A stretch of 64,000 nucleotides of DNA from Selaginella moellendorffii (lineage: Eukaryota > Plantae > Lycopodiophyta), in assembly GCF_000143415.4 (NCBI RefSeq), contig NW_003314283.1, positions 985,734 to 1,049,733 on the forward strand, written 5' to 3'. Made by a program: the position numbers and the translations under genes. The notes beneath the pieces were generated by a model that was not told the DNA's origin, made no database searches, and was given only the letters and a program-made list of their open reading frames with translations. This document shows, one piece after another, positions 1,074 to 47,445 of this stretch (the stretch's first letter is position 1; every line of letters starts with the position of its first letter).

Positions 1074-3951
1074 CTCTCTGTAATCATATTCTTCCCTTTC
1101 TATGGTTAAGCTTTGATCTCCACTCTCATGGTAAATGACTACCTTGCAACGTATTGAAGGCTATCCAATGTGCAAAGAACAGTTTGTGATCCAGTTAGAG
1201 AAAAAATGTCAAACTTTGAAGCTCCAGGCTAAAACACAGTTTAAAGCCTTCTCTTCCTCCTCTCCTGAGATTTTGCTTGTTTCCATCAGCAAGCAAGAAA
1301 TTAAACAGGAAGTTCTTACTTGCTCATGATCAGTTGTTTCTCTCCTATGCACTCAAGCAGCGATAAGTACAGCCATAGCTCCAGCTCCAAAGGCAAGCGT
1401 GCTGAGCAGGAGAAAGATCCACGATCCACGATCGAGCAAGCGACGTGCACGGTATCAACTCCATTTCTAATTCGAACCTAAAATGGACGGTTGGGAAACC
1501 GTGCCATTAAAAGTGTGTACATAAAACATCCAAATAAGTTTTGTTTGATTATTAAGGATTTTCAGCACTTTATTTAAATATTTTGAAATGCTTCTAATAA
1601 TGAATGAATTGGTGATCTTAAGCTTTTAGATTTATTTTAACTCACTTTTGTTTAGTATCAAGCTTCCTGATGATGAAGAAGATTATTAATAACATCTTTT
1701 GTCACTTCCACCAATTCAAATTGTATTGGCATTACCAATTCATTGCATTGCTAATTCAAATCAAATCTCCAATATAAATGGTATGGTATGTGAGTTGTTA
1801 TTATACAAGTGGAAGTCATTTATTATTAGACAACCATTAAATTATTAGATATTGAAGTAAGGAGGGGACTATAAATATAAACATGAGCAGATACAATTGT
1901 TTAATTATAAAGTTTTAAAAACAATACTTTTATAGATTATGTTATATCCTTTAGTAAGCTTAATATACAGTAATACTTATAATACCATTATTGTATTTAA
2001 ATTTTTTTAGCATGATTTATAAAAGTATATAAAATAATAGTTGCTACTTTTAATTAGTTTGAGATTTCCTCCCACACTAAGTATATTAAAAAATTAATAA
2101 ATAAAAAAATATAATTTTAAAATAATTATATTTTACATTTTTGTAAAATTTTAAGGCATTAGTTAAGTTTCACACTTTTATTGAACATAAAAAAAGATGT
2201 TTTGAATGGAAGAAAGAATTTATTAAATTATATTTATTAATTATTTGAAGATTTTTTCCAATTTTTATTTTGTTCTAATTAAGTAGACACATAAGATTAA
2301 CGTTAATTTGTTATTATCATAAAAAATTGTAAATTACTTTACATATATACAAATTTTAAATAAAGTTATTCATTAAATATATCAAAGGTTGCTACTCATA
2401 GATTATAGATACTAAGACATATCCAATAATAACAAAAAACTTTTATATTAAGTAGAATCGCTATGTTAAAAGCTGAAACAAGTGTGGTGATATAGGGGGT
2501 GTGATGGTTATAAAGGATATTAATTTTTAATTATTACCTTTTATAAAATTTTTGATATATTTATTTATGCTTATAACAACTAAGTTTACAAAAAACTTAA
2601 AATTTCTTTTGACCTTAATTTTATTACATATAAGCAATAGTGAAAAAATTTCTTGGTAGAAATCACAAAAATAAAAACTAAGTAAAAATATATCAAAACC
2701 TATATTAAAACTAATTAAGTTTTTAGTAGTTTATACATATAAAAATTTAATTTCTCATAATGATAAAATATTTTTCTGTTTATTGTAAATTATAATAGTA
2801 TTTATAAAAAAATGAGTATATAAATTTACATAGAACATTATGAGATGATGGTGACTGTTATTTCAATAATTTAGCTTTATGGGCTATAAATAAATATTAT
2901 AGAAATTCATTATCTACTGTTTAAAATATTTATTAATGTTTTTAAATATTTTTTATGGTTATTAGATACATTCAATTAAATGTTCCGATAAAAAAGTTTC
3001 ATTTTAAATATAAAAAAAGTTTTCATTGCTTAATCACCCAACTTCTCACCAAATCACACCACACCCAAAAATGAACTTCACTTATCTTATGCAATGTCTA
3101 AAAAATTATTAAAAAATCTAAAAACACTTAAACAACAGTCAGGTAAAAAACAGGTCCAATCACTTTGAGTTGATAGTGCTTAAGCATTTGATCAAGCTAA
3201 CTCAAACCTTCAACAGAATCATTGAAAAACACAATGAGTTCATAAAGATTCCTGACTTGGACCTTGATAGCATAAGCTCAGAGGCAGCAAAGAAAGTTTA
3301 ACATTGAGCACTCACTAAATTGGCGTAAACTCCTTTGCAAAAAAGTGAAAAAGGAAAAATAAAGTCACATAACATATTGTATATCAACCAATCCACACTA
3401 ATGTCTTTGGCGCTTGCATTCTGCTCAAAAGATGTTAGAGCAAACGATGGGATTGGCAACACATGCGTGAACAAAAGTCATCCGGATCATTTGGCTTGGG
3501 CTGCGTGAATGCTGCCATCAGCAGGCTGATTCACTGGTTGGATAATTCTAGCTGGAGTTGCTTGAGCCTGGTGACAAATCAAACCCAACTTCAAAAGCAT
3601 GCTCCAATTAACGTTGTACATATACATAGACTATAGATCACCTTTATGCCAATGTTTTGTATACAATGTAGACTTTCAACTGGTGATTCAGGAAACCTAT
3701 AACTGTTTCAAACCAAACCTAGAATTTAAACACTAGAAGTAAAAACTTTAGTGTAGATGAAGATTGGTCAACTAGGTTAGAGTAATTGATGCTTGCTACT
3801 TGCGCCAAATAATTCCTCGCCACGACCAGATTATATCAAGCGCTCTGGGCATACACTGCCAACCAGGAGAATTCCCCACTCGCCATGCCATCTGGACGAT
3901 GAGATGCTTGCTCGCGAGAATCTAGTGTTCTTCCATTTGGTCGAAGACTCA

Positions 3952-6570
3952 TCAATCCAATGAGCGGTTTGGAGGTGCCGAGGCGTTCATCGAGACCCTG
4001 GCTGAAGCTTCTTCCATCTCTATGGTTCCAAGTTGCAAGCTTTTGCTCTCCATGAGTTTCACCACTCCCTCACATCCATCACTCTTGGCAGCAGCAAGCC
4101 ACGAGCCCGAATCGATCGTCTTCCCGGCGGCACGAACACCACAGTCGAGATCCAGGTAGAGCTTCGCCGCCGACACCAAGGTCCCCCACTCCACACCCTT
4201 CGGTAGAACAGCCATGCTCTCGACGAGCTCCTGGGCATCATCCAGCTTCCCGGCCTTCCCAAGGATATCGATCATGCAGCCGTAGTGCTCTCCCACCGGA
4301 GCTATGCCGTGATCCGAGACCATCGACACGAAGCACTCGCGTCCCTCCTTCACCATACCGCATCCTATCAGCACGCTCGCGTACGAGACCTCGTCCGGCA
4401 AGACGCCCTCCACTTCCATCTCCCGGAAGAGCTCCATGGCCTCTCTCCCATGGCCGTGCCGGGCATACGCCGCCACCATTGCGTTCCAAGCTCTCACGTC
4501 CCGCTCCGGCATGGAGTCGAAGAGGCTCTTGGCTTGATCCACCTGGCCGCAGCGAGCATACGCCTCGAGCAAGCTCATGGACAAGATCGAGTTCCTGTCC
4601 GGCATCTCGTCCAGCAGCCACTTTGCCTCGTCCAGCCGCCCCGAGCTTGCGTACGCCGCCACCATCGCGTTCCAGGCCACCGCGTCCTTGACAGCTATGC
4701 CGTCGAACACCCTCCTGGCTTCCTCGAGGTGGCCGTCTTGTGCGTAAGCCACCACCATCGCCGTGGAGGATCCCTGCGTTCTCTCCGGAATGGTGGCGTA
4801 GAGTCCCTGCGCGAGCTCCAAGCTCCGCTCCCTCACGTACGCTTGCAGCATCACCGTCCACGAGGCCACGTCCCTCTGCGGCATCCTGTCGAAGATGGCC
4901 TTGGACTCTTTCATCTGTCCCGAGTGAGCGAACGCCACTGCCAGTGCCACCCACGCCGAGACGTTCCTCTCGTGCATCCTGTCGAAGAGCTTCTTCGTGT
5001 CGTGCAAGTGCCCGCTCTTCGAGAACGCCATGAGCAAGACTGTCCAGGCCGTCGAGTTCTCCCCTGGAACTTGCTCGAACAGGTCCATCACCTCCGGGAG
5101 ATGCCCATACTGCTTGCACGAGCACACCACCATCGTCCAAGTCACCTCGTTCCAGTAGCTCATCCTCTCAAACACCGCCTTTGCACGAGCGAGGTGGCCA
5201 GTCCGAGCATACGCGGAGAGCAGCGAGTTCCAGGCCACCAGATCCTTCTCGAGCATGTCGTTGAACAGCCTCCTCACGAGCTCCAGATGGCTGTCGTCGT
5301 GAGAGAACGCCTGGAGGAGGATCGTGTTGGATGCAACGTTGTGCATCGGCATCAGCTCAAACAAGGCCCTGGCATCGTCCCTGTATCCGTTGTGAGAGTA
5401 GGCCTCGAGCATCCTGTTCCAAGTCTCCAAACTCCGGTCCGGCATCCGATCAAACAGCTCCTTTGCATCGTCGAAACAGTCGTTGTCCGCAAAGGCCGAG
5501 AGCATGGTGTTCCACGACGTTGTGTTTGGATCCGGCATGATCTGAAAGAGCACCTTCGCCTCTTCAACTCGGCCACCTTGAGCATAAGCCGAGAGCATAA
5601 CGTTCCACGACACTGGATCCGGATCTGGCATGGTATGAAACATGCTCTTCGCTTCCTCCAGCCGGCCATTCTTCGCATACGCATTCACCACCGCGTTCCA
5701 CGAGATCACATCCTGTTCCGGCATCGAGAAGAAGAGCTCCTTGGCCTTGTCCACAAACCCGTTCTCAGCATACCCGCTTATCATGGCGTTCCAGGAGATC
5801 ACATCCCGCATTGGCATCCTCTTGAACAGAAACTCTGCCTCGTCGTGGAAGCCGCTCTGGCTGTAAGCCACCGTCATGGCCGTCCAAGCCACCACGTTCC
5901 TCGTCGGCATGGTGACAAACACCCGGAACGCGTGCTCGAGGTACCCGTTCTGGGCATACGCAGCAACCATCGCGTTCCAGGTGACCAGAGTTCTCTGCGG
6001 GATGGCGTCAAACAGCTTCTTGGCCTTGTTCATCTCCTTGTTCTGTGTATAGATTGTCATCATCGTGTTCCACGAGATAACGTCCCTACCCTGCATCCTG
6101 TCCCACAGCCTCCTGGCCTTGTGCAGTGCTCCATTCACGGCATAACCGGTAAGCATGGTGGTATAGGCCACGGCGTTCCTGTCCGGCATCCCCATGAACA
6201 GCCGCGTAGCGTCGTGCATGAGGTTGTTCTCCACGTAAACTTTGAGCATGAGCGAGTGCGTGTAGTCGTTCCTGTCCTTGATCCGGTCGAAAACCCATCT
6301 GGCTTCGACGACGCTGCCACACTTGCCATACATTTCGATGAGCAAATTGCTGAGGAACCTGCTGCCGCGGTACACGGATTCCCGGATGCAGGCGTGCACT
6401 CGCCGCCCTTCCTGCAGGTCCTTTGCATCTCCGCAGGCCTTGACGAGGCATATGAAGTTGTTTCTTTCGTTGCTCGCTTCCGCCAAGTTCTCCACCTCGG
6501 GCTGGAGATCAAGGTTTCTCGGAGCTGATTTGTCAAAATGCCATTTAGGTGGGTGGCGGATTTTCACCAT
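3952..6570 (-). CDS. PLS-class pentatricopeptide repeat protein with a long run of short (S-type) repeats; no DYW motif
   Basis: 872-aa intronless ORF with ~31-aa repeats of the type 'DVISWNAMISGYAENGFVDKAKELFFSMPE'; ends with HYGCMIDILGKAG and an E-like region. Confidence 0.93.
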   Translation of the reverse strand: MVKIRHPPKWHFDKSAPRNLDLQPEVENLAEASNERNNFICLVKACGDAKDLQEGRRVHACIRESVYRGSRFLSNLLIEMYGKCGSVVEARWVFDRIKDRNDYTHSLMLKVYVENNLMHDATRLFMGMPDRNAVAYTTMLTGYAVNGALHKARRLWDRMQGRDVISWNTMMTIYTQNKEMNKAKKLFDAIPQRTLVTWNAMVAAYAQNGYLEHAFRVFVTMPTRNVVAWTAMTVAYSQSGFHDEAEFLFKRMPMRDVISWNAMISGYAENGFVDKAKELFFSMPEQDVISWNAVVNAYAKNGRLEEAKSMFHTMPDPDPVSWNVMLSAYAQGGRVEEAKVLFQIMPDPNTTSWNTMLSAFADNDCFDDAKELFDRMPDRSLETWNRMLEAYSHNGYRDDARALFELMPMHNVASNTILLQAFSHDDSHLELVRRLFNDMLEKDLVAWNSLLSAYARTGHLARAKAVFERMSYWNEVTWTMVVCSCKQYGHLPEVMDLFEQVPGENSTAWTVLLMAFSKSGHLHDTKKLFDRMHERNVSAWVALAVAFAHSGQMKESKAIFDRMPQRDVASWTVMLQAYVRERSLELAQGLYATIPERTQGSSTAMVVAYAQDGHLEEARRVFDGIAVKDAVAWNAMVAAYASSGRLDEAKWLLDEMPDRNSILSMSLLEAYARCGQVDQAKSLFDSMPERDVRAWNAMVAAYARHGHGREAMELFREMEVEGVLPDEVSYASVLIGCGMVKEGRECFVSMVSDHGIAPVGEHYGCMIDILGKAGKLDDAQELVESMAVLPKGVEWGTLVSAAKLYLDLDCGVRAAGKTIDSGSWLAAAKSDGCEGVVKLMESKSLQLGTIEMEEASARVSMNASAPPNRSLD

Positions 6571-6638
6571 GGCTCTAAATTAACACCAGATACGAATGTT
6601 AGAAAACATAGAAGATTGCCAAATCTTAAACCGGAATC

Positions 6639-8369
<1,731 letters not shown>

Positions 8370-8466
8370 CGATATGATCTAAGACTTCTCTAAAGAACCA
8401 AGTTAAACTAATCACTCTTACAATACAAGCCGTCTTACCAAAATTTAGTTTTGTTTGGTCTATAGC

Positions 8467-9465
8467 TTACTTCTTTCTTCTTCGTTTTCTTGGTCGATCA
8501 TCTTCGTCCCTCGAGTGAGCATGATCCAGCCTACGCTCAACACGAATACTGGGAAACGCATCTTGGAGGGCTCCAAAGAATCTTTTCCATCCCACGTAAA
8601 CACCCTCGATCACCATCGCAGTGATATCCCTCGGGACTTCATCGACCGAGCCCTGAGCGATCCTGAAACATTCCAAATAGTCGTCCCTGTCCACGAAGTC
8701 GGGAGCCTTTCGCCAGCTTCCTCCAGCCTTGTCGACCAGAAGAACATTGGGAGAGACCATCGTCACGCTCTGCAAGATGTGTGCCAGCATGATCCTTCCA
8801 GTTCTCCCGTTTCCATCCACAAAAGGATGGATGCTCTCGTACTGGAAGAAGAACCTCCCGCCGAGTTTGAGCAGCTTCGTGGTCTTGTCCTGTGATCTGC
8901 TGCTGCTGAGAATCCTGCCAAGATCTCTGCTCGTCTTCCTCATGAGACCCCTGAGCGCTGAATCGATTCTCTCGGGTCGCATGAAGAAATGCTTGCCGTC
9001 TTTGTTGTCTACGTAGACAATCTCGGACAAGCTCCTGATTCTCCCGGCGATGCTCGGACGAGTGAAGCAAAACATCGACTTGTGAGAGTCGAGAAGCAAA
9101 CCAATCCCTCCACTGCCGAATTTCTCCTCACCCTGTCCAAAGAACCATGGCACAAGTGCTTGATTCAGGCCCCAGACGTTCTTGATCCGCTCGTCACAGT
9201 CGTCGTGCATCTCCATCTCCAGGACTCCATCCTTGTGGATTGCCTGTTGGGTCTCCTCCAAGGTATCAAACCCTTCGCCCTCGATCTTGTTCACTTGAAA
9301 GAGCCATTCTGTGGTGGCTCCAGGTGAGTAGCGCCTTGCCGCCCAATCCTTTTCTGGAGCTCCTAGATTCTCATACCTTGAGCGCATTCCTGAAATCTCT
9401 TCCACCATAGCGCTGGTGCTCATTCCCTTGCGCCGCCAAAAAGGGTTCTCGCGATACTCCTCCAT
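8467..9465 (-). CDS. Fic (Fido) domain protein 1, intronless, 332 aa, with a C-terminal basic NLS-like tail
   Basis: Canonical Fic motif HPFVDGNGRTGR; upstream VNKIEG resembles the (S/T)xxxE(G/N) inhibitory helix; C-terminus RPRKRRRKK. First in-frame ATG is at 9465. Confidence 0.9.
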   Translation of the reverse strand: MEEYRENPFWRRKGMSTSAMVEEISGMRSRYENLGAPEKDWAARRYSPGATTEWLFQVNKIEGEGFDTLEETQQAIHKDGVLEMEMHDDCDERIKNVWGLNQALVPWFFGQGEEKFGSGGIGLLLDSHKSMFCFTRPSIAGRIRSLSEIVYVDNKDGKHFFMRPERIDSALRGLMRKTSRDLGRILSSSRSQDKTTKLLKLGGRFFFQYESIHPFVDGNGRTGRIMLAHILQSVTMVSPNVLLVDKAGGSWRKAPDFVDRDDYLECFRIAQGSVDEVPRDITAMVIEGVYVGWKRFFGALQDAFPSIRVERRLDHAHSRDEDDRPRKRRRKK

Positions 9466-9559
9466 TAGCAAACCCAATGCTTTTGCCCTAATTTGCCAAG
9501 CTTTAAAGTCCCAAAAAGAGCATATTCGAGAATTCTCTTAGCATATTCTTGTCTTTCGT

Positions 9560-10512
9560 TTAGGGCAAAACAGAGAACTTGGCTGTTCTAAAGTGCTCCA
9601 GCTTGCCTTGCGCGGAGAATTTCCACGAGATCTTCCTCACCTCGCGCTCGCTCACCACCCAATGCGCCGCGCAGGAGAATTCCTCTCCCAATTTCACCTT
9701 CTCTGGAACGCATGCGGTGAATCCATAGGGCATATGGATCAGCGTGCTGTGTTCTCTGTCTTCGTCGCAATCTGGCTTGAATCCTCTCCAGATCGCTGGT
9801 TTTCTCGTCGCCAGGACCAAACCGGTGGGATAGAGCGTCGTCTCCTCTCCTACGAATTCCCCTGCTGGTTCCTCTCGCTCGGATTCCAGAGCCACTGTCG
9901 CAAGATCGTGATTCCAGACGCTCCCACGCCACGAATCCTCCGGGCGATCGTCCGTGTCCCGGCTCTCCTCGAGGATTTGGGACGCTGAGAGCGATCCGTC
10001 GGTGTTGTAGCTGACGATGATCGCTACCCTCGCATTCTTGCCTGCAAAGAACAGAGAATCTCTAGAGAAAAGAAAAGAGGGCATGGATGGACGATTCGCT
10101 CACCTGGAAGCATGAAGAACACCTCGCCGACCACTGGGCGCTGAGGGAAATCGATGTCCAGCCCCAGCCAGGCAAGATCGCCATTGGGAAAGACCAGCGT
10201 CCTGGAATTTGGGACCGCGGGGTGGATGATCCCGTCCGCGCCGCAGTGCTCTTGCCGATTGATCAGCCACGATTTGGGCGTCATCTTCCTCTCGGAAGCT
10301 CCGGCCGGATCATACCAATCGTTCCTGTGGAACACAACCGAGCCATCTGCGGCGCGAGATTGGAATGACCTGATGCTGCGGTACGTCCTGGCGATCTCTA
10401 GCGAGTCGCTCACCCGCCAGTTGATCCAGATGCCGTGCCAATGCTGCCAGTGAAATTCGCCAAACCAGCGCCATAGATCTTCCGGATTGAGCTTGCGCGG
10501 TTCTTCCGCCAT
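9560..10512 (-). CDS. DUF3598-like beta-barrel protein, 296 aa; exons 10512-10104 and 10041-9560
   Basis: The 62-nt GT-AG intron 10042-10103 joins the two ORFs in frame (MLPG|KNAR). Pattern WHGIW...RSIRSF...HRN...HPA...EVFF...R.AIIVSY...PEKVKLGEEF matches DUF3598 proteins as recalled. Confidence 0.72.
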
Positions 10513-10531
10513 AGCTAGAAATAAAGATTTG

Positions 10532-10605
10532 ACTTCCTGGCAGGATTCGAACCTCACCAATACGAAGTATTCATCACTGGCAGGATTCGAACCCTCGACA
10601 GTGAT
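10532..10605 (-). repeat. Two tandem hairpins carrying the tRNA T-loop/B-box motif GGTTCGAATCC
   Basis: Identical 17-mer CTGGCAGGATTCGAACC at 10537-10553 and 10577-10593; outer stems ATCACTG/CAGTGAT and ACTTC/GAAGT. Confidence 0.7.
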
Positions 10606-10807
10606 AGGGCATTTTAGGTTTCTTGGTTTGGGCGGGAGCGATGGTGATGGAGGCGATGGAGGCGATGGAGGCGATGGAGGCGGCGGAGGTCGTGGCGAGA
10701 TATGTTCTCCATGCCTCCGGCACAGGTAGGGCTGCGTGGAGAACCACGGCAAGGTATGATCGATCTATTGCGCTTGCCATCTCTTATTTTCGTTGATTGA
10801 TTCCCAG

Positions 10808-11835
10808 TTGCTGAGGCATTTCGTTCACAAGGAGGATTATGAAAGAAGGCGCCCGATGAAGCGTGACCCGGATCACGAAGCACAGATTTACATCGTCACT
10901 TTCTTGGTCCTTAGCCTCTCGTAAGTTTCTTCCTTTTCTTCCTCTTGTCTAGAATTTAAGGCCTTCTCTCAGGACCTCTGGCGTGGAGATTATCAAGTGT
11001 TGCAGTGGGTCTAACCAAGCGTGCGCCTTTCTAGCATTTTCGCTTCGACAAACAGTGGCGATTATTTTCGGTGGTGGTGGCGGGGAGCGCGTGGAGGTGG
11101 ACTATGAAACAGGAGAACACACTTCTTATGGGCGACTGGTATCCTTTTATCGCGCATTCAGGTCCTGTTTGGAGGAGCCATTTCCTCTCACGGTTGGGAT
11201 GCTGAGAAAATGGCATCGAGCTTTGGTTCCAGCCGGGGGAAACTTTCGTACCACAGACGTTTATGTCGGCTCCAGGGACTCGTGGCGTCCGTGTTTTCAA
11301 CTTGAGGAGAGACTGGCTGTTGTAGTCGACGAGCTCGAAAGAAGCATCCATGCTGCTGGTGGACGAGAGAGCTTAATCATCACAGCTGCTGGACGGTTCT
11401 TCTACGATTTCGAGATGATACACCCGTTTGCAGATGCAAATGGTAGAGTCGGGCAGCTATGTTTGTATTTTTACTCTCCGCCAGGTAAATGTTCCCTTTC
11501 ATTGGCACTAAAGGACTTTCGTTTTATCCCAGGTAATGCAGTTGCCAACGTTTCTATGGACATCAGTGGATGGCAATTCCTTGGACCGAGATGGCTTGAA
11601 TGCCTGCCTCGAAGGACCTGATGCCTCGGTGTTGATCGCAGCCATTCAGGCTGGGATTGAGTACGGAAGACACAGGGGGGTACGTAGGCTTTGCTGCATT
11701 AACCTTTTCTTTCTAGCTTTATAATCTTTGTTTGTTCAGCTGGACAAGATGCCATTGCGCTTAAACGACGAAGAAACAGCGATGTACAACAGGACGCTGC
11801 AGTATGGCCACGCTTACGCCAAGGCGATTCGATGA
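10808..11835 (+). pseudogene. Fic domain protein 2, multi-exon, with an apparent +1 frameshift (pseudogene or homopolymer error)
   Basis: LTVGMLRKWHRAL..GNFRTTDVYVG and HPFADANGRVGQ. Introns 10921-10972, 11485-11532, 11680-11739. Similarity to Fic1 (DRDGLNACL vs DRDDYLECF; IQAGIEYG vs VIEGVYVG) resumes only after a frameshift near the T5 run at 11468-11472. Both ends uncertain. Confidence 0.75.
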
Positions 11836-11993
11836 AGGCTTCTTGACTGGTAAGCTTTCTTTTCTATTGTCTTGTGTTTTGATTTCTTTTTAATCCTCAG
11901 AGAACACCATCCGCGATATCCTTCTCGAATTCTATTAAATCTATTGTTAGGTCAAGAGGAGCAATGCCGCGAAGAATGTGAGTATCTCACCAC

Positions 11994-14240
11994 ATGATCC
12001 CCTCTCGCCAAAATGTTAAGCTTGGTTTCTTCTGCTTCTTACACCGCCACAAATCCTTCTCACTGAGAAGAACCACCCAAAGAGACGACGAAAAGAATGT
12101 TTTGCTTGGAGCGCTCAAGTCGTGTAGCTTCTCGGGAGACCTGGAAAGAGGTAAAAAACTCCACTTGGAAGCGATCGAGAGAGAGCTCCATACCGACGTC
12201 TATATCGCAACCTCGCTTGTTCATATGTACGCCAAGTGCGGCAGCATGGCGGAAGCTTGGCAAGTCTTCCAGAGCATCAGCAATCCAACGATCGTCTCCT
12301 GGAACGCTTTGATCCTGGGATGCGTCGAGAACGAGCAGTGCTCGCTCGCTCTCGAGATCTTCTCTCAAACGAGGGCTCCAAACTCTGGAACTTTCACAGC
12401 TGCTGTCATGGCTTGCTCGGGCTTGGCCGAGAGAGAAGAATGGCAGGAGCTGGATCGTTGTCTCGTCAAGATCAAGAGCCTGGAACAGGGAATGGTGATC
12501 CATTCTAGGAAACAATCGGCAGGCCTACCGGAGAGCTTGTTTGTGGAGAATTCTTTGATCGATATGTACTCGAAGTGTGGATGTTTGCTGGATGCCCGGA
12601 TGGTTTTTGACAGGATGAAGTTCCACGACGTCGTGTCGTGGAATTCCCTGCTGCTGGGATACGTCGAGAATGGATTTTGCGTGTTGGCCCTGGAGTTGTT
12701 CTCGCGGATGGAAACTTCGGGCTTGAGACCCGACCCGAGAACGTTTGTAGCAGCACTTATAGCCTGCGCTCCAGAAGAGAGTACTATCAGCAAAGAAGAA
12801 GAAGAGAACAGTGAAAGAAAAAGAGATGGACTTACAACCTGCCTGGAGAAGACGATGGCTCTTCACTCCCAGGCAGCAGCAGCTGGTTTAGTCGAATCCC
12901 AGATTTTTGTGGCCAACACGCTGGTCGATCTGTATGGAAAGTGTGGAAGCTCAGTGGATGCTCGCAAGGTGTTCGATAGAATGGCTCACCACAGCACTGT
13001 TTCGTGGAACGCTGTTCTCTTGGGATACGTCGAGTGTGGAGAGAGCGAGCTAGCTATGGAAGTGTTCTTGGCGATGGAAGAAATCAAAGATAGAGGAGGA
13101 GTAACACCAAACACTAGAACTTATCTCGCGGCACTGAAAGCATGTGCGGGGATCGCAGACAAAGAGGAAGAGCATGAAAAGAAAATGATGGAAGAACACG
13201 AAGAAGTTGACGAAGAGTTACGCAAGAACATCAAGAACGAAGAACTTGACGTAAACTTGGGACGAGGAGGAAGAGCAGCGAAGCTAAAATCTCTCAAGAG
13301 AGCACTCTGGATCCACCATCGCTTACCTCGAGGAAGTAGTGATATCTTCATCGAGAACACGCTGATCGAGCTATACTCCAACTGTGGCTCCCTCTTGGAC
13401 GCTCGGAGAGTCTTCGATTCCATGCCTCTCCACAACCTCGTCTCCTGGAACGCGATGGTGGTGGCATGCGTCGAGAATGGCGAGCCGGAGATGGGAATGG
13501 ATCTCCTCGATTCTATCCGAGATCGAGAGCTTCTCCCGGACGCCCAAATCCTGGTCTCCACGCTCGCGGCCACGACCAGCCTCGATCTCTCGCTAGAAAA
13601 TGGGACGATCCAAATGCCCTCTCTGGGCAAATGCTGCAAGCGCCGGATCCACGCCCTTGCCTGCCGCTGGGGGCTCGAGACAAATCAACTCCTGGCCAGC
13701 AGCGCGATCGACCTCTACGCCAAGTCCGGTGGATCCATGCCCGCCGCGCAGCACATCTTCGATTCCTCGCCATCGCCCTCCGCCAGGGCCTGCTGGAACG
13801 CCCTCCTGGCGGGCTACTCGATCCACGGCAACTGCGATCGGGTGCTCGATCTCTTCGCCCAGATGCGCAGAGAAGCCACCGATCCCGACGCGATCACGCT
13901 GCTGGCGATCCTGGCGGCGTGCAGCCGCGGCGGAATGCCCGATCTGGCGAGGAGAATCCTGGCAGCCATGCCGGAGAGGCATGGGATCTCGCCCAGCGCG
14001 CGGCACTACGCCTGTGTGGCGGACGCGCTGGCGAGGGCGGGGCGCGGCGGAGAGGCGGTGGAGGTGGTGGCGGGGATGCCCGTGGCGGCGGATGGGGCGT
14101 GCTGGATGGCGGTGCTGGGGTCGTGTCGGCGGTGGAGGAATGTGGCAGCGGCGGAGAAGGCGTTCCAGGAGCTGCTCAAGATCGACGAGAGCAAGCCCGC
14201 CGCCTATCTGCTCATGGCGAACACTTACTGCTACTACTGA
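11994..14240 (+). CDS. PLS-class PPR protein (E-type end) with charged insertions
   Basis: 748-aa ORF with repeated LVHMYAKCGS...VSWNALI motifs, ending HYACVADALARAG...AYLLMANTY. Confidence 0.92.
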   Translation: MIPSRQNVKLGFFCFLHRHKSFSLRRTTQRDDEKNVLLGALKSCSFSGDLERGKKLHLEAIERELHTDVYIATSLVHMYAKCGSMAEAWQVFQSISNPTIVSWNALILGCVENEQCSLALEIFSQTRAPNSGTFTAAVMACSGLAEREEWQELDRCLVKIKSLEQGMVIHSRKQSAGLPESLFVENSLIDMYSKCGCLLDARMVFDRMKFHDVVSWNSLLLGYVENGFCVLALELFSRMETSGLRPDPRTFVAALIACAPEESTISKEEEENSERKRDGLTTCLEKTMALHSQAAAAGLVESQIFVANTLVDLYGKCGSSVDARKVFDRMAHHSTVSWNAVLLGYVECGESELAMEVFLAMEEIKDRGGVTPNTRTYLAALKACAGIADKEEEHEKKMMEEHEEVDEELRKNIKNEELDVNLGRGGRAAKLKSLKRALWIHHRLPRGSSDIFIENTLIELYSNCGSLLDARRVFDSMPLHNLVSWNAMVVACVENGEPEMGMDLLDSIRDRELLPDAQILVSTLAATTSLDLSLENGTIQMPSLGKCCKRRIHALACRWGLETNQLLASSAIDLYAKSGGSMPAAQHIFDSSPSPSARACWNALLAGYSIHGNCDRVLDLFAQMRREATDPDAITLLAILAACSRGGMPDLARRILAAMPERHGISPSARHYACVADALARAGRGGEAVEVVAGMPVAADGACWMAVLGSCRRWRNVAAAEKAFQELLKIDESKPAAYLLMANTYCYY

Positions 14241-14431
14241 AGAGCCCTAAATATAAGCGAAGCTTTTACAAAAACGAATATCCTTTAAGGGAAAAATAAT
14301 TTCCGGTTTAAAACATTACTAAGAGAATATCCTATAACGGCTAGAGAATATGCTTCCAAATACGAAAAACTTAACCAATGGTTTAGATTGTTTTATTTCG
14401 AGCCAACAAGAATTTATACACAAGAACAAGA

Positions 14432-17400
14432 TCAGAAGTTGCATCTATCCTCGCTCCCATCGTACAAATCGTCGTGGATCTCGTCCTCGAAACCATCATC
14501 TTGCCGATGATGCTCATAATAATCTCTCGACGAATCCTCCTCCTCTCCCTGCCCACACGGATCGTTCCCAGCAGCGATCTTCTCACCTTCCTGGGGAGTA
14601 CTGCTCTCTTCGTATCGCTCTTCTTCTTGCTCGAGCGCAGCGTCGTCACGATGATCTTCTTCTCTCCACAAATCCTCAGCGTAAAGCTCCTCTCCCTGTC
14701 CTTGTTGGTCACTCTCGGCCACGAGCTCCTCGTCCTCGTCCTCGTCGATGGCCTCCATTGGAGTGTAGTTCTTGTATTGTGCAAGCTCTTGCTCGAGGGC
14801 GGCAGCGTCTTGCTCGGCCTCCATGGCTGCGGCTGCCGTGTCCGGATCCACGTCCGTGAACTGGAACTTCACTCTCTCTGCCATGACGCACATCGGACAG
14901 GGCGCAGCTCTCTGTAGCCGGGACTCCAAAAGCCTCTGCTGCAAAGTTGCCATCTCCGTGGCGTGCCGCCGCTTGAGTTTCTCCATCTCCCTGTACATTC
15001 TATCTGCGTCTTGCTCCGCCAGTGCCGCAGCGTCCTAAACCAAACAACAAAAAGGTTTGTCAGCTGGCAAACAATCGAAAGAGCTTTCAGGCTTACGTTC
15101 GCGATCGCGGCGGCCTCCTCCGCTTCTTTCAAACGGACAAGCAGCTCCCCAGCAGCTTGTACGGCCTCGGCGGTGTCACGCAGCTGCGACTGGAGGAACT
15201 CAATCTCCTCGTTCGCGGCTTCTCGCTCCTGCTCACGCTCGAGATTCAACGCGACTATCTGAGCTGCCTGCGACTCGAGCCACTTCAGCTGTGACGAGCT
15301 TGCCCCTGCTCGCATGGCCATCTGCCTCACGTCCGTTACTCCCTCGCGGATCCTCCGTTGCTTTGCTACGAGCGCTACATGCTTCTCTTGGAGCTCTGCA
15401 TACTGCTCCAGCAGCCGGGCATGACCTGTCATTGCTACTTCCAATGCGTCCTGCAGCTCCTCGACTTCACGACGTCGTGCTTGATTGTCATCCGCCTTGT
15501 CCGGATCTCTCTGTTGCGCCAATGCAAAGTACTCTGGCATCTGCTCGTCATGCTTTTCGGGAGTCGCGTTGTGATCGTTTTCTCTGCTGTCGTCGACAGT
15601 GTTTTCTTTGATGCTCTCGACAGAATTTTCTCTGCCCTCGACAGCATTCTCGTCAATCTCCATTTCTTCATCCGAATCCGAATCCACCGTTGCTGGCACC
15701 GTCATTGGAAGCGCTAGACTTAGTCTCAAGAGGTTGTAGCTCCTACGGGCGTTGCATGCGCTGGAATAAGGACCGTCAACTCCTTGTTGCTTTTCCTTGG
15801 ATTTCATGCGCTTTAACTCATCCTGTGGCAGCCAGAGGCAAAACGTTCGGAAACTAAGTCAGCTAGGATTAAGTATCATTACCTTAAGTTGACGTATTTG
15901 CTCCCTCAGCAAGTTAGAGTCGGAGGTAGTTTCCTCGTTGACAACCGCCTTGTTCTGTATAGCCTTCGCTCGTTGAGCAAATCTCAAGGTACTAGTTGAC
16001 TCGCTTTTGCAGCTGCATCACGGAAGAAAAGACCATCCACAAAGAACGATTCATACAGGAAATTTACCTGTCGGCTGGGGATACTGCACATATCATTGCC
16101 AGTTTGGCATTGCCACCAAGGGACTCTTGCAAGAGAAATGTAAGCCGGGAGTCCCGATATGGTACATGGCGTTGCTTTCCTGATTGAGCAATTTCTGCCA
16201 GTATGTTGATCACGTTTCTGTACAAAATGTCAGTTTATGTACCAGCGACTTAAAACTACATACCCAAGCTGTGAGAGAGATTTGTTTATGTTGCCAGCTT
16301 CTTTCAAACGTTCACCTGCAGCACCACTTTGTTTTTGTCTCTCCGATCCAGCAAGATCCACCAAATTAATGCGGCTTCTTCGAACGCTGCTCATACCGTC
16401 CGCCAACGTCTGCTCCAAACCATGACTATTAGTGAGAAATCTTTACCATCCACTCACCTTGTACCGGCATTCTAGCACACAAGTGAATACGGTGTGTGAC
16501 CGAGAGCTTTCCGTGTTCAGAGAAGTTGCACCTATTCTACGGTTTCCTAGCCCTTTAAGAAGAAGCCGGGAGACATCATCCATGTTCGACACGTATTCCT
16601 CGGTAAGGTTGTCAACATAGACGCCAGTTTTTACATCTTCCCGAACCTGTATGCCACAAATAAACCTTGTGGCGAATTCAAAGTCGTGTTACCTGAAGGT
16701 TTTTGTGCCTTGGCTCCAAGAGGTCAGCAATTTGTTCGTTATAAATCTGCAACAAGATGTTAGGAGACATGCATTCGTTGTAGATGAAATTTTACCTCGA
16801 GAAAGGAGCAGCGGCACTGAAAAAACAGCTGCTTCTCTGCATTTTTTGTCTCCTCCTGTGAAAGAGAGAGTCCTGTCAGATAAAATATAAGAAGTCCGCG
16901 AGAAAGAAACCATACCTCTTTTATTCGCGAAAACAATGTCTCAAACACCCGTGGCGTCACTCCCCTCTCGGCGCTAGGAGGCTTTCCACTTGTGGGATCA
17001 TGGACAACTCCCCACATCGTGTATGTTTTTCCACTCCCTGTCTGCAAGGAAGAAGATGTTTCAATACAATGTCACATGCATGCGAGGTAAATACCTGTCC
17101 ATAAGCAAAAATCGAACTGTTAAATCCAGCCAAACAATTTTCCACCATTGGCAATCCAACCAGCTTAAACATCTCCTCCTGCAAACGGAGATCAAAGCTT
17201 TAGCAAATAAAACTAAAATCATCCATTCACATATACCTGAGTAGAATCCTCATCAGCAACAGCATCGAAAGTGTAATGCTGGTCGCAAATCGAGAGAGAG
17301 TTCGTGGATGCCTTGCTGATAATAGCGCTAGATTGCTCCAGCAGCTCCTTCTTGTTGAATGGCCTCACTCTAACGAGAACCTGGCATAACGCAACAAAAA

Positions 17401-17749
17401 GAGGGGAAGTTAAAACCTCTGGAATTTCTTACACTGACCAGCTTACCGAGACTCCAGTGTCGCTGGATTTCTCGCTGTCCGCCGGTTGCTCGGAATTCTG
17501 CTGCTCCCACAGTAGCTTGCGCTTTGGAATTTTGCTCGCGGACGAAGGGGGCCGGGGCGGAAGCCCGGGGCTGGAATGCAATGGCGTGAAATTCCCCTTG
17601 ACTGCTGCCTTGACGCCGGATTTGCAATGCAGGGGAGACTCACCGCAGAGATTACTCCCTCCCCGCCCCGGCGTCGTGTTTGGGGGCACATTCTCAGCAT
17701 TTCTCTTGATCTTGTGCTTGACCGGCGAGCTTCTTGCTTGAAACGCCAT
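14432..17749 (-). CDS. Kinesin-12 family motor (PAKRP1/KIN12-like), multi-exon
   Basis: Motor motifs FAYGQ|[54 protein letters not shown]; C-terminal [19 protein letters not shown] and [19 protein letters not shown] typical of PAKRP1-type tails. Confidence 0.92.
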
Positions 17750-17910
17750 CGCAATCTATACGATCGATCGCCCGCTGGATCCTCTCTCGCAATCCCTACA
17801 AATCTACCAGGCGCCTCCTCCCATACCTAGAAGATCCTCCCACGCGCTCGGCAAAACCCTAAAGAAGCACACCCAGAGAGAAAAAACACTGCCCCTCTCA
17901 AAAACGCCTA

Positions 17911-34270: not shown

Positions 34271-37200
34271 GCCTCCCGTTAACCACTATCTCTCCGCTTA
34301 CCTGGCGGTGACGTGGCATCAGGCCTTATGTTTGTTTTTTCTCCAGCGCACTCCCTCTCCCGTCCGTCGCCGCTGCGCACTCCCGCCCGCGGCTATCGCC
34401 CGCCCGCTCGCCCTCACGGCTCCCGCCCGCACTCGCACGTCCGCCCGCGCCCAGCGTGCCTAATTACTTCCACGTGGCTACAGCCCCAACACTTAGCCAA
34501 ATTTCAGTCACCGCGCGCGTGGACGCCTTTCTACTGCTATCATGGATGACCATTAGGAGTATGAAAGCTTCTCATTAATTTAAATATATGTAATGTAAGT
34601 ATATAAAGAATTTGTTTTTTTATTTATTCTTTGCTAAAATTGAGTTTTTCATTTAAAGAGCTTTTCTTTCTTGTCTAGTAAAAGGAGTTGTTTTTAAACT
34701 GTTAGAAGCTTTTCTTTTACCTGTAATTCTTTCCACTAAAGGTTTTGCCCACTTCAAGGATGTACTATAATTATTAATATGTTATTGAAATTCTGCTGCA
34801 GAATGAATAAGATCGTTTAGCCTAGTTTTAAAGGTTGCAACCTTCTATTGTATCATTTCTAAATCATTATCAACCATAGATAAAAAAACTTCATTAAAAA
34901 GTTTTTGTAATATATCTATCATCTTTTTTGTTATAATGTTGCTTTTGTAACTTTTGATGGAGTGATATCTTCCTGCTCAAAATTCATATCAATATTTAAA
35001 ATTTGTTTAGTGTAAATTACCTCTATAGTAGTCCTTAGTTGAATTTCTTGTTGATGTTGTATATTTTGATGGATATCTTCCTACTCAATATTCATATATA
35101 TTAATATATAAAATATGCTGGTTTACCTCTAATGTAATCTCCAATTGAATTTTTGCCTCATGATAAACATTTTGATGGATATTTTCCTGCTCAAATTTTT
35201 ATAAGTATTTCAAAATTTTAATTAATAAGTGAATTACCTTTGTCATAGCTTCTAAGTCAAGTGCTTCAAAATCTTGATGATGATAAAATAAGTCATCTGA
35301 CCTAAGTTCTAAAATTGCATACGATTGTGATGGTTGAACCTCATAACTAGTTGTAGTCTAGTCAATTTTCTTTCCTTGTTTTAACATAATAATTTTTATT
35401 TAATGCTTGCAAAAGTTTCCTTTAGTTACCCATGGACAATTACACCAAGTTGAAAAAGCCCAATTACTGTGTCCTTTCACCTCCGACAATAAAATATGAT
35501 ATAGCTGGATTTGAAAAGGATTGTACATAAAATTTATAAATATTATCTTTATCAAATTTTACTTGAGAGTTGTTAATATTTCTTGCTTTAACAATTACAC
35601 CATCAATTAGTTTTTCATATGCATGGTTTCGAATAAAACTATGATCTTTGCAATAACTAGTAAATCAGTACTTCATATGAACCTTAGTACTAAGTTAATG
35701 AATTGCCCAATCCATCCTTCAATTGCAAGTATTTTTTCTTTTTTTGGATGAAAGTATAGCTTTCATATTTGCATGGAATGCCTCAATCAAACTATTTGTC
35801 TCCTTGTTAGCATAAGGAAAATTTCGAGCAGCAACAACCCACATATCTATCAAATATAAATTAAAATAAATTATAAAAATTAAAATATTGATTCACTTAC
35901 CAACTTTGTCCTTCCATTTATCTTGAAAATACTTGATAAAGGCTACTTCATTTTGAAATCCACCTCAAAATGTTCCATAAGTTGTTTAATCTCAGCTCGC
36001 ATAATATTATCATCATGAAAAGCTGTGTGAATTAAATGATACATAATATTTCTGAGATATTTCCATATTTCCATCCTAATATCCTAAGATTTTACCTTAT
36101 AAATAATATATTTGAGCTAATTCCTCCTTACATGCCAAATACATAATAGAATTTGACAATCAAATATAGCTCTATATAAAAGAAAACAATTAAATTATAT
36201 CATATCAAATTAATTACTTTATAGTATTAATCTTTGCTTAAGCATCATCAATCATTATTGCATATGGTTTCCAATTTAATATGTGTTTTAAAACTTGTTT
36301 TTTAAGAGTTATCATCCAATTCTTCATATATTCTCCTTTTTCACTAAAAGTTAAAACCCATGCAATTAGAATACCATTTCCATGATAATAAAAAACAAGT
36401 ATGGTGTATAATGGGAACCATCAATTATTAAATATTATTCACTTAAAAATGAATGAAAATTCTACCTTGTAGCAATTAGTGCCAAAAGTTGCATCAAGAC
36501 TCAATAAATTATTATTTGAAAAGTCCACCATCTTTTATAGTTGCCAAGTTGTCTAAATCCCAATAGTAAAACAATCTTTACCTCGATCACCTTTTTGATA
36601 GAAAAATACTTTCTTGGGATTTGTGTTCTTCTAAATGCATACACTCTATATGTCATTTTTATGTAATCGATAAGTTGAAAGTGAATACTTCCTATGCAAA
36701 TTATTGATATTCTACATAGTTAGAAAATCATTTCGACGAAAAGGTTCACCTGTTGACTTATTCCTTCCCACAATTTGTATATGCTCATTATAAATCTGAT
36801 TTGATGTGAAATCCTGCTAAACCATATGAATCACCCAATGTCAAATATCTGCTGAAAGCTTCTGAGGAAATAATAACTTTCTTCTAGTCATATCAAGTTG
36901 ACCATGATAAGGAATCCCATTCTTATCACAATGCTCTCTATGATAATACATAATCTATACGTAATCAGGCCATTTGTAAAATTGTTTAACCAAAAAATTG
37001 CAAAGTCAACCTTGCTTATTAGAACTTCGACTTAGTCTATTTCCAGGTTTTGACTTTGGTGTAGATTTAGCAACCATGGAAGATGTTTCACAAGCATCAT
37101 GTTTTCCATATTCACACCAATACTTATGTTAAGAAGTTAGTGATTATATTTTGTTAAAAAAATATACTTGATTAGCTTGTGTTTTTGGGTCATTTCAAAT

Positions 37201-39240: not shown

Positions 39241-40794
39241 TTTTTCCACAAATAACTCTGGGCATTTTGCTTCCAACAAAGGACATCACAGAGCATTCTT
39301 TGCAGCGGTGTGGAAACTCTTGCGAAATTTCCACCGATGATTCTGGCCACTTTGCTGGGAGAACAGCTACGTTGCTTTTCGGCAGAGATTGTATTAGTGA
39401 GTGTGGACGTTCGTTCCACCAACCGCAAGGAGATGGAGGTCTAAGCCAAGTTGTACTACATGAAATCTGTGATGCAAGACACCAACAGTTCTTTCAGAAT
39501 AAGCTAGAGAAAATAGTCGAAAGCATGGGGTCCCTCCAAACAGAAAAAGCTAGAATCATCAAAGATCTGAACCTTGATTTTGGGGAACTTTAACAACTTC
39601 TGCGACTGTAGGTTTGTTTCGTTTGGTGTCTTTGAATTTTTGCCAGGCTAGGGCTTTAATGAGCGAATCCTTTCACTGGGTCTCTCAGCAGCACCGGTGG
39701 ACTCAATCAAAGTCTGTCCAAGGAAAACAAAGGAAAAAGCTGAGGAAAAGCAATTCCTATGGAAGAAGAAGGCACAGAGGCTTCTATAGGATGCTTCAAG
39801 TTCTTTGTTGGATTGTGAAGCAATAAAACTTCAGTGAAAATTCAAACCCCCAGGAGGTTTATTAATTTTTGGTTTGCTTAAGCAAACCTGTATGGTAATA
39901 GATATACCTAGAATATGTTTGGATATTTTAAGATATTCTACCATATTAATCTTGTATTTATAATAAACACTTTTTAGTATATTCTTTTTTATTTTACTAT
40001 CTAATGGTTAATATGTAATAAGATTAATCTTGATTTATAAATTTTAAACATATTTATAATTATTGATCAATTGAATTATTCAATGACACTACTATTAAGT
40101 AAACCAAGTGTTGTTGCATCCAATGTGCAACAAATTATTTAGTTATTAAGTAAAGTAAATTATAAATTATACATTAATTTTATATGTTAAAGTTTTATAC
40201 ATTTATGTATTATGCCATAAGCAATGTAAAATATGGAGATTAGTATAAAAATGTTTTAAACATTCTATTTAAATTAGTATTGCCACAATTTACTAGAAAC
40301 ATCAAACTTTAACTTGTTGAAGGTTTTATAGTGATAAAAAATAGTATTTGTAAAACTCACTATTTTTTATCATCTTCCAGTAGTAAATAATTAATCCCAA
40401 TAATTATTTAGCCAGCATTAACAAATTTTATATAAAAGTATTAAAATTTTGTCTCATTATTAGTTTGTTTAGGTGGTAGTGGTTATACAAAAAATATGAT
40501 TGGATATTTTAAAATACTCTACCATTTAACTTAATTTTGTATTTATAATTTATAAACTTTCCTAAACACTTTTTAGTATATTCTAATTTATTCTACCACA
40601 TGTCTTGCAATTCTCTTATATCTCAAAAATATGGCAAGGAATTCTAAAAATTTATATTCTTATCAAAAAGGTCTTAGATTTGACTCTGTTAATTAACTAA
40701 GGGAATCACACAAAGGCAAATACATAAAAATCTCTTTCTCTTATTTTCTAGCTCTAGAAAATAAGAGAAAGAGATTTTTATGTATTTGCCTTCA

Positions 40795-41027
40795 TATGAG
40801 GCTTCAGCCTCGATGAAGAAAGGTTGTGAGGAATCAGCATGGATCAAAACGGGAGTAGAACTAAAGGCTACCTTGAGAGTGTCGAAGGCGTGCTGGGCAG
40901 CAGTAGACCAAGAGAAGGGAACATCCTTGCGAGTGAGATGCGTGAGAGGAAGGACAATGTCAGAGTAGTGATCAATGAATTTGTGGTAGAAGTTGGCGAA
41001 ACTAAGGAAAACCTGAACGTCCGACAT
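40795..41027 (-). mobile_element. Ty3/gypsy LTR-retrotransposon pol fragment (RT thumb / RNase H start)
   Basis: DVQVFLSFANFYHKFIDHYSDIVLPLTHLTRKDVPFSWS..QHAFDTLK.AFSSTPVL.H.D....FFIEAEAS. Confidence 0.88.
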
Positions 41028-47214: not shown

Positions 47215-47445
47215 TGTTAAATCTAATATAGTGGCTGATGCTTTATCTTATATTCATCATGTAACAAAGCTACACTCATAGTTTTATTATCATTTAAGTA
47301 AAGTGGTTAGTGAATTTAGACAATTGGTTGAGCATGTTTAGATTTAGAATGTTGAGGTAGTCTCTTTACAAGTCTAGATAAAAGCCCCTTTTTCATTGAT
47401 GGATGGAATTCTATACTATAATGGTTGTGTATATTTGCTATGGGT
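47215..47445 (+). mobile_element. Highly decayed gypsy-like pol remnant
   Basis: KSNIVADALS followed by FSLMDGILYYNGCVY within an AT-rich, CpG-poor block. Confidence 0.45.

Follow-up and report, generated by a model that had tools for sequence, protein, structure and literature searches.

The closest described relatives of the enzymes discussed here are FICD/HYPE and C. elegans FIC-1, which act in the endoplasmic reticulum (ER) as AMPylases and deAMPylases of BiP. To our knowledge, a Fic AMPylase from a land plant has yet to be characterised. The second protein family involved, defined by the DUF3598 domain, finds its point of comparison in BFA1 of Arabidopsis, a stromal protein. BFA1 is presented, in a passage of PMC7607909 that cites Zhang et al. 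2018, as an assembly factor of the CF1 part of the chloroplast ATP synthase. In the Fic mechanism a His residue serves as the base, Asp/Asn residues bind Mg and Arg residues bind phosphate, and an inhibitory Glu blocks productive ATP binding; in FICD this Glu is required for deAMPylation (PMC6826200, PMC8373988). Reviews and surveys treat eukaryotic Fic proteins as essentially metazoan, with sporadic occurrences elsewhere (PMC2686095, PMC4454073, PMC8097203). Here we analyse a stretch of 64,000 nucleotides from the lycophyte Selaginella moellendorffii (contig NW_003314283.1, positions 985,734 to 1,049,733; hereafter the window), in which two Fic genes, termed Fic1 and Fic2, flank a DUF3598 gene. 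A previous examination of the letters alone, the sequence-only reading, had proposed these three genes as a horizontally acquired or lineage-restricted writer/partner/decoy system.

We assign a probability of about 0.65 to the reading that these are three separate nuclear genes, each transcribed and each with its own history, which lie side by side because the genome is compact and not because they are inherited together as a unit. Comparison with paralogous loci carries this reading. The survey of linkage covered four other Fic1-family loci (L001/L002, L003, L006 and L007) and one DUF3598 paralog locus (L004), all in one genome: neither a DUF3598 nor a Fic2-like sequence was found within 8-10 kb of the former, and no Fic gene was found at the latter. 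Moreover, the duplicates differ in age, with a synonymous divergence (dS) of 0.34 for Fic1 and of 0.82-0.88 for DUF3598; the two genes were not copied together, each having been duplicated by itself. The distance of 94 nt from the DUF3598 stop codon (9560-9562) to the Fic1 start codon (9465) is ordinary for this genome; in the Selaginella loci that were fetched, neighbouring coding regions often lie 64-127 nt apart, and the Fic1 stop codon lies 98 nt from the start codon of a hydrolase gene that is unrelated to it. Finally, no antitoxin-like motif (S/T)xxxE(G/N) was found in the DUF3598 protein. Several points weigh against the reading of three independent genes. The gene order is kept on both haplotypes of the plant and each of the four sequencing runs shows expression of the whole trio, which leaves room for co-regulation. 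A single contig of 3.5 kb crosses all three genes, indicating that their transcripts abut or overlap. The spacer between DUF3598 and Fic2, whose transcripts start approximately 75-100 nt apart, could be a shared promoter. In addition, the survey stops short of three more paralog loci in Selaginella and of every other species, and we know of no biochemical activity shown for any plant Fic protein.

Positions 5199-17835 of the window are 100% identical to scaffold GL377587.1 of the S. moellendorffii assembly GCA_000143415.2. The other haplotype of S. moellendorffii is represented by scaffold GL377593.1 (locus L005), as judged from its 98% identity to the window and its unchanged gene order; the synteny sought there is thus maintained, within one plant and hence not as an independent observation. 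Along the window an alpha/beta-hydrolase gene (minus strand, ATG at 8369) is followed by Fic1 (minus), DUF3598 (minus), Fic2 (plus) and a PPR gene (plus). The basic description given by the sequence-only reading is borne out by these coordinates, Fic1 and DUF3598 being co-oriented and 94 nt apart and Fic2 divergent, as well as by Pfam profiles: PF02661 matches the Fic1 open reading frame (ORF) 8467-9477(-) with 44 bits and the Fic2 ORF 10983-11621(+), which belongs to an exon of both alleles, with 41.6 bits (cut-off 24), and DUF3598_N matches the ORF 10024-10752(-) with 43.5 bits (cut-off 22). The two Fic genes are, as had also been stated, divergent yet alignable, hhalign giving a probability of 96.7% with 25% identity over 112 columns.

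The transcript data consist of contigs from four public runs, belonging to four studies, that were placed on positions 7900-12400 of the window. Recorded only as 'RNA?', these contigs are transcript assemblies, since they are free of introns, show GT..AG or CT..AC at every skip and, in one run (X6), carry an adapter and a poly-T end before position 9538, which marks the poly(A) end of DUF3598. All three genes are covered by contigs from the four studies; such contigs drop minor variants and give no ranking of expression among Fic1, DUF3598 and Fic2. For Fic1 and DUF3598, contigs of the window type are present, with 0 differences in run X1. The 3.5-kb contig mentioned above comes from run X3, and the introns of both strands are spliced out of it; it consists of abutting or overlapping transcripts joined by the assembler and does not represent a polycistronic message. 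The introns anticipated in DUF3598 and Fic2 appear in these contigs with GT..AG ends, and Fic1 has none.

The Fic1 coding sequence (8467..9465, minus strand) is intronless and encodes 332 residues plus the stop codon; unspliced contigs cover positions ~8295-9469, and the other haplotype holds an intact ORF of 98% identity (L005:11035-12030 (+)). A search of the translation with a regular expression recovers the complete catalytic motif HxFx(D/E)GN(G/K)RxxR as HPFVDGNGRTGR (8794..8829, minus strand, residues 213-224), whose H, F, D, G, N, G, R, G and R positions are invariant in the alignment of eight out of eight Fic1-family members. Upstream of it, the segment VNKIEG (9277..9294, minus strand, residues 58-63) resembles the motif of the inhibitory helix: in the profile alignment to the structures 5jj6 and 5jj7 (the E274G mutant), E62 of Fic1 falls in register with E274, the inhibitory Glu of C. 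elegans FIC-1. E62 is invariant in the family, as is the surrounding FQVNxIE. The first position of the motif is Val instead of Ser/Thr, so that the strict pattern (S/T)xxxE(G/N) is unmatched, though the Glu is in register.

The AlphaFold2 (AF2) model of Fic1 is of moderate quality, with a mean local confidence (pLDDT) of 62 and a predicted template modelling score (pTM) of 0.65. Its 28 top Foldseek matches in the PDB are all Fic proteins, the best being FICD and FIC-1 with TM-scores of 0.51-0.58, and by profile as well as by fold the solved structures closest to Fic1 are those of C. elegans FIC-1 and human FICD. On the other hand, Pfam detects no TPR repeats in Fic1, only 57 residues precede the inhibitory motif, and the most hydrophobic stretch of 19 residues lies inside the Fic core. 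Since it lacks both the anchor and the TPR domain, Fic1 is FICD-like without being an orthologue of FICD. At its C-terminus stands a basic tail, RPRKRRRKK (8470..8496, minus strand), which recurs in the L006 copy but in none of the remaining paralogs; its resemblance to a nuclear localisation signal suggests that Fic1 may be nuclear. Comparison with the L006 copy, which is 91% identical, gives a ratio of nonsynonymous to synonymous divergence (dN/dS) of 0.15 at dS 0.34, and therefore indicates that Fic1 has evolved under purifying selection. Because all residues of the catalytic motif are kept together with the inhibitory Glu, Fic1 is, by analogy with characterised Fic proteins, most likely an auto-inhibited AMP-transferase. 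It would be a working member of an intronless FICD-like family, transferring AMP from ATP to Ser, Thr or Tyr of a target protein, and it may also deAMPylate by means of the same Glu, as FICD does; we infer its activity, its target and its location alike.

Relatives of Fic1 proved few, both in a word search and in exhaustive searching, which retrieved 270 proteins at E <= 0.001 from 1.84 billion representatives, only four of them at E <= 1e-30. Every named sequence among the top matches comes from S. moellendorffii or from the fern Adiantum nelumboides, the sole other named match being a weak one in the amoeba Heterostelium (E 5.6e-05), which agrees with the earlier suggestion of a lineage-restricted distribution as far as the Fic1 family is concerned. 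Two Selaginella proteins already bear the name 'adenosine monophosphate-protein transferase fic-1' in RefSeq. Selaginella possesses at least eight loci of the family, and the five that were examined (window/L005, L006, L001/L002, L003 and L007) hold uninterrupted intronless ORFs with the motifs HPFxDGNGRxGR and FQVNxIE.EGF and a conserved C-terminal IEGVYVGWKR block; at the paralogous loci these genomic ORFs occupy L001:8001-9089, L003:8001-9068, L006:10001-11023 and L007:9878-10879, all on the plus strand. Faulty gene models partly hide the family. Indeed, the GenBank models SELMODRAFT_418963, 407185, 447619 and 414686 (P0001, P0005, P0006 and P0008) splice out the catalytic core, the model 444864 (P0007) falls below the Pfam cut-off for Fic, and Fic1 itself is unannotated on either haplotype in the GenBank annotation.

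Maximum-likelihood analysis unites the 12 plant sequences in a single clade on a long stem, with support of 100/100. This clade is divided into two subgroups, each of which contains Selaginella as well as Adiantum sequences; the family is therefore older than the split between lycophytes and ferns and had at least two members by that time. The paralog at L001/L002 begins with the signal-peptide-like sequence MLLRFILAIALVIAVDARA (L001:8001-8060 (+)), while Fic1 and the L006 copy end in the basic tail, and as judged from these termini the family may be spread across different compartments. Its nearest relatives outside plants are tandem intronless Fic arrays on large ENA contigs, with three copies in one case (L009:138-6927) and two in the other (L011:3876-9134). 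The gene content of these contigs is eukaryotic (SH2, a PXA-RGS-PX sorting nexin, reverse transcriptase), which suggests that the relatives are eukaryotic as well. Several transfers are believed to underlie the Fic groups of eukaryotes (PMC4454073), so that the Fic1 family may have been acquired horizontally; such an event would be ancient, and no donor is visible.

Fic2 is organised differently. Its 5' untranslated region (UTR; 10612..10855, plus strand) comprises an exon reaching from at least 10612 to 10753, an intron at 10754-10807 and the beginning of an exon at 10808 (contig joint 10751/10806, with the cut shifted by +2). Splice joints divide the coding region of the window allele (10856..11848, plus strand), which starts with the ATG at 10856, into exons at 10856-10920, 10973-11484, 11533-11678 and from 11739 onwards, and the transcript contigs define the corresponding GT..AG introns at 10921-10972, 11485-11532 and 11679-11738. 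The first 5'UTR exon holds a microsatellite with a unit of 9 nt (GATGGAGGC-like, 10638-10698) at which the haplotypes differ, the transcribed allele having insertions of 3 nt and 9 nt in this region (at 10631 and 10648); the microsatellite gives rise to a short upstream ORF, the end of which lies beyond the first splice. Within the protein, the motif HPFADANGRVGQ (11421..11456, plus strand) carries Gln where the canonical motif has its second Arg, so that the complete catalytic motif is lacking, and no Glu stands at the N-terminal position which the MAFFT alignment equates with the inhibitory one. The segment 'TVAII' was considered as a mutated TVAIEGN inhibitory motif and rejected, as MAFFT places it one helix later; either way there is no Glu. 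The sequence SLDREG, which follows the Fic2 motif, possibly occurs there by chance. The N-terminus is hydrophobic (IYIVTFLVLSLS, with a Kyte-Doolittle value of 1.88 over 19 residues), and the approximately 230 extra residues at the C-terminus match nothing in Pfam or NCBIfam.

The two haplotypes differ at this gene. On L005 the Fic2 allele is intact, with five coding exons and an open frame of 465 residues that equals the length of the annotated product. In the window, pairwise alignment reveals an extra base at 11467 (plus strand) that neither L005 nor any of the transcript contigs has; the resulting frameshift, seven residues past the Fic motif, leads to a premature stop at 11619-11621, so that the window copy reads 221 residues. 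Two deletions relative to L005 follow (11832..11936, plus strand): exon 4 has lost approximately 315 nt at 11832/11833, and the last exon approximately 300 nt, most of its length, at 11932/11936; the deleted segments were not found elsewhere in the window. The gene end that had been placed at 11835 is a stop codon created by the first of these junctions, and the window copy is in fact disrupted. All Fic2 contigs, in four runs out of four, represent the L005-type allele, the letters between the joint 11471/11529 being identical in all four, and a loose contig end of run X3 at 11932 continues into L005-type sequence. As contigs drop minor variants, this is no more than a hint that expression of the broken allele is low or that its transcript is degraded. 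Both haplotypes come from one Sanger-era assembly, in which the indel at 11467 is without independent confirmation; an assembly slip is an unlikely cause of the disruption because of the two large deletions. On the window haplotype Fic2 is thus a null allele. Fic2 is a much more divergent Fic gene than Fic1, with five coding exons, and its intact allele is present only on the other haplotype; the heterozygous null allele offers a natural control for its dispensability.

The relationship of Fic2 to Fic1 leads to an alternative in which DUF3598 is an irrelevant passenger within an old head-to-head pair of Fic genes. Fic2 would have arisen by local duplication of the plant Fic family, would have acquired introns, been extended at the C-terminus and fitted with an anchor at the N-terminus while losing regulatory residues, and would act with or on Fic1, for instance as a pseudo-enzyme partner. 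In a tree, exon 2 of Fic2 stands beside the plant Fic1 clade, Fic1 is its best family-level match among plant sequences, and the relatives outside plants form tandem arrays too. The placement is nevertheless weak (SH-aLRT 80, a long branch, half of the columns empty), and the best single match of Fic2 in the retrieved set is a Fido protein of a dictyostelid and not a plant sequence. Overall, the identity between Fic2 and Fic1 amounts to 25-33% over approximately 80-110 residues, the four other Fic1-family loci inspected carry solo genes, and the supposed interaction of the two proteins is hypothetical. A word search with Fic2, whose length range of 117-371 residues excluded proteins of 465 residues, returned only the window's own fragment model of 146 residues, SELMODRAFT_413999. 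On balance we consider the pair an unlikely explanation, and we retain the reading of separate genes.

The DUF3598 gene (10512-9560, minus strand) consists of two exons and encodes 296 residues. Exon 1 (10104..10512) begins with the ATG at 10512, the 5' ends of the transcripts lying at 10508-10537; it is followed by an intron of 62 nt with GT..AG ends (10042..10103; joint 10040/10103 in four of the four runs) and by exon 2 (9560..10041, including the stop codon at 9560-9562), beyond which the poly(A) site is located at ~9538. The DUF3598_N match is stronger for the allele on the other haplotype (LOC112348290, P0009; 58.5 bits), which is 100% identical to the window in exon 1 and differs by a few residues in exon 2. 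In the second half of the protein, BFA1_C scores 21.9-22.9 bits (21.9 for the ORF 9560-10084(-)), just under the cut-off of 23.5, a domain for which the paralog LOC112345089 (P0010, at locus L004, 66% identity) reaches 29.5 bits. A word search recovered the two Selaginella paralogs only and no close relative elsewhere; in the Atlas, the clusters that lie nearest consist of DUF3598 proteins from cyanobacteria. As the DUF3598_N profile begins at residue 14 and no in-frame ATG exists upstream of the start codon, the transcript 5' ends lying 0-25 nt upstream of the latter, the protein lacks a chloroplast transit peptide. Its AF2 model, built with an alignment of two sequences, is unusable (pLDDT 32). 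The gene product would thus be a two-domain protein of cyanobacterial type, a cytosolic relative of BFA1 rather than BFA1 itself, and from these sequence features the gene is probably not a BFA1 orthologue.

DUF3598 and Fic2 are separated by a short bidirectional spacer, the core of which (10537..10593, no strand assigned) contains two exact direct repeats of 17 nt, CTGGCAGGATTCGAACC, at 10537-10553 and 10577-10593. They are 40 nt apart, 0.01 such occurrences being expected by chance; both haplotypes carry them, and every other locus that was fetched is without them. Each contains the T-loop/B-box-like sequence GGTTCGAATCC on the minus strand, and the repeat could be a promoter element or a remnant of a tRNA or of a short interspersed nuclear element (SINE). 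A tRNA in the spacer was looked for and rejected: ARAGORN finds none and Rfam yields only a snoRNA match at chance level (E 0.63), so that of the tRNA-like hairpins described earlier only the direct repeat is left.

The functional module foreseen by the sequence-only reading would cast Fic1 as the writer and Fic2 as a regulator or decoy, while the DUF3598 protein would be a partner, adaptor or substrate of Fic1; selection would keep the three genes together, and they would be co-regulated. The identical order on both haplotypes, the co-orientation of DUF3598 and Fic1 across 94 nt, the very short divergent spacer with its repeated motif and the transcription of all three genes in four studies are what such a module would lead one to expect. 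However, an arrangement found on both haplotypes of a single plant is not thereby independently shown to be conserved, gaps of this size are nothing unusual in the genome, and the linkage recurs neither at any other examined Fic1-family locus nor at the DUF3598 paralog locus. The recent Fic1 copy of 91% identity moved alone, the ages of the duplications differ, and Fic2 is null on one haplotype of the sequenced plant. The writer/partner/decoy proposal does not withstand these observations, and we judge the module to be improbable. A wider version, in which seed-free vascular plants would possess an AMPylation system of their own, is in our estimation very doubtful. It would be made up of a head-to-head Fic pair, with one member an auto-inhibited and possibly nuclear enzyme and the other anchored and either regulation-free or pseudo-enzymatic, together with a cytosolic BFA1-like barrel that serves as their adaptor or substrate, and a short promoter common to the genes would contain the repeated 17-nt element.

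Bacterial contamination, or a very recent bacterial insertion misassembled into a plant scaffold, can be dismissed as highly improbable. In its favour stand the mostly prokaryotic make-up of the Fic and DUF3598 families, the lack of introns in Fic1 and the cyanobacterial clusters next to the DUF3598 protein in the Atlas. Against it, two of the three genes have GT..AG introns of 48-62 nt, one transcript is polyadenylated, the locus lies between plant genes on both haplotypes, the plant-only clade with its fern members implies an old residence, and none of the genomes of 185,579 prokaryotic species combines the signature peptides of the family with a tblastn match. In these scans, which used family-specific peptide patterns that distant relatives could escape, no locus was confirmed for the Fic1 family or for DUF3598; in particular, not one representative of a prokaryotic species has the peptides LFQVN[KH]IE and [IM]EGVYVGW as well as a tblastn match. 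The sequence-only reading had likewise set contamination aside, and rightly so in view of the spliceosomal introns, the poly(A)-tailed end, the two haplotypes and the plant neighbours.

Some observations concern the surroundings of the locus. The window contains AT-rich blocks with a GC content of 0.18-0.30 (2001-3000, 35001-37000, 40001-41000 and 45001-51000), which are probably repeats or transposon remnants, the remaining gene space having approximately 50% GC. Downstream of Fic2, contigs placed over 11903-12400 skip positions 12139-12191 with CT..AC ends, corresponding to an intron on the minus strand just upstream of the annotated coding start of the plus-strand PPR gene (~12246); this suggests an antisense or overlapping transcript near the start of that gene. 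Numerous loose contig ends in the same interval derive from PPR paralogs.

Taken together, the proposal from which we started is partly supported: the genes are resident in the plant, lineage-restricted and uncharacterised, and a three-gene system finds no support. A module of three genes would have made the locus striking, and it fails the comparison with the paralogous loci. The kind of enzyme is already known, and the interest of the locus comes from the plant Fic family and not from the cluster. The locus documents an expressed Fic family under selective constraint that is common to a lycophyte and a fern, and it provides plant biologists with candidate AMPylases of different predicted compartments.

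Compared with described systems, the locus shows a superficial likeness to the class I Fic toxin-antitoxin pairs VbhT/VbhA and FicT/FicA, in which a Fic gene also stands beside a small co-oriented upstream gene. Here, in contrast, the upstream gene encodes a beta-rich DUF3598 protein of 296 residues without an inhibitory motif, the putative inhibitory Glu of Fic1 is provided in cis, and DUF3598 and Fic1 give rise to separate transcripts, as seen from the poly(A) site at 9538. The DUF3598 protein has in common with Arabidopsis BFA1 the combination of DUF3598_N with a BFA1_C domain, borderline in this case, and a two-domain length of approximately 290 residues, but it differs by its lack of a transit peptide and by belonging to a Selaginella-specific pair of paralogs with 66% identity. 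The bacterial class II Fic proteins (Shewanella SoFic, Clostridioides difficile Fic and Bacteroides BT_2513) have the same core fold and motif as Fic1. Their matches in the PDB and NCBIfam are nevertheless weaker, Fic1 remaining far under the NCBIfam equivalog cut-offs (32 vs 550 bits), and the peptides specific to the Fic1 family are absent from the prokaryotic representatives when a tblastn match is required. The best matches to Fic1, both in profile and in fold, are FICD/HYPE and C. elegans FIC-1, with which it shares the HxFx(D/E)GNGRxxR motif; its putative N-terminal inhibitory helix with the aligned Glu would correspond to the class II arrangement. The identity to these proteins is limited to ~17-19%, and Fic1, an intronless gene for 332 residues ending in a basic tail that resembles a nuclear localisation signal, has neither the transmembrane anchor nor the TPR domain. 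Moreover, FICD is a single gene in metazoans, whereas the plant Fic1 family is multi-copy, with at least eight loci in Selaginella.

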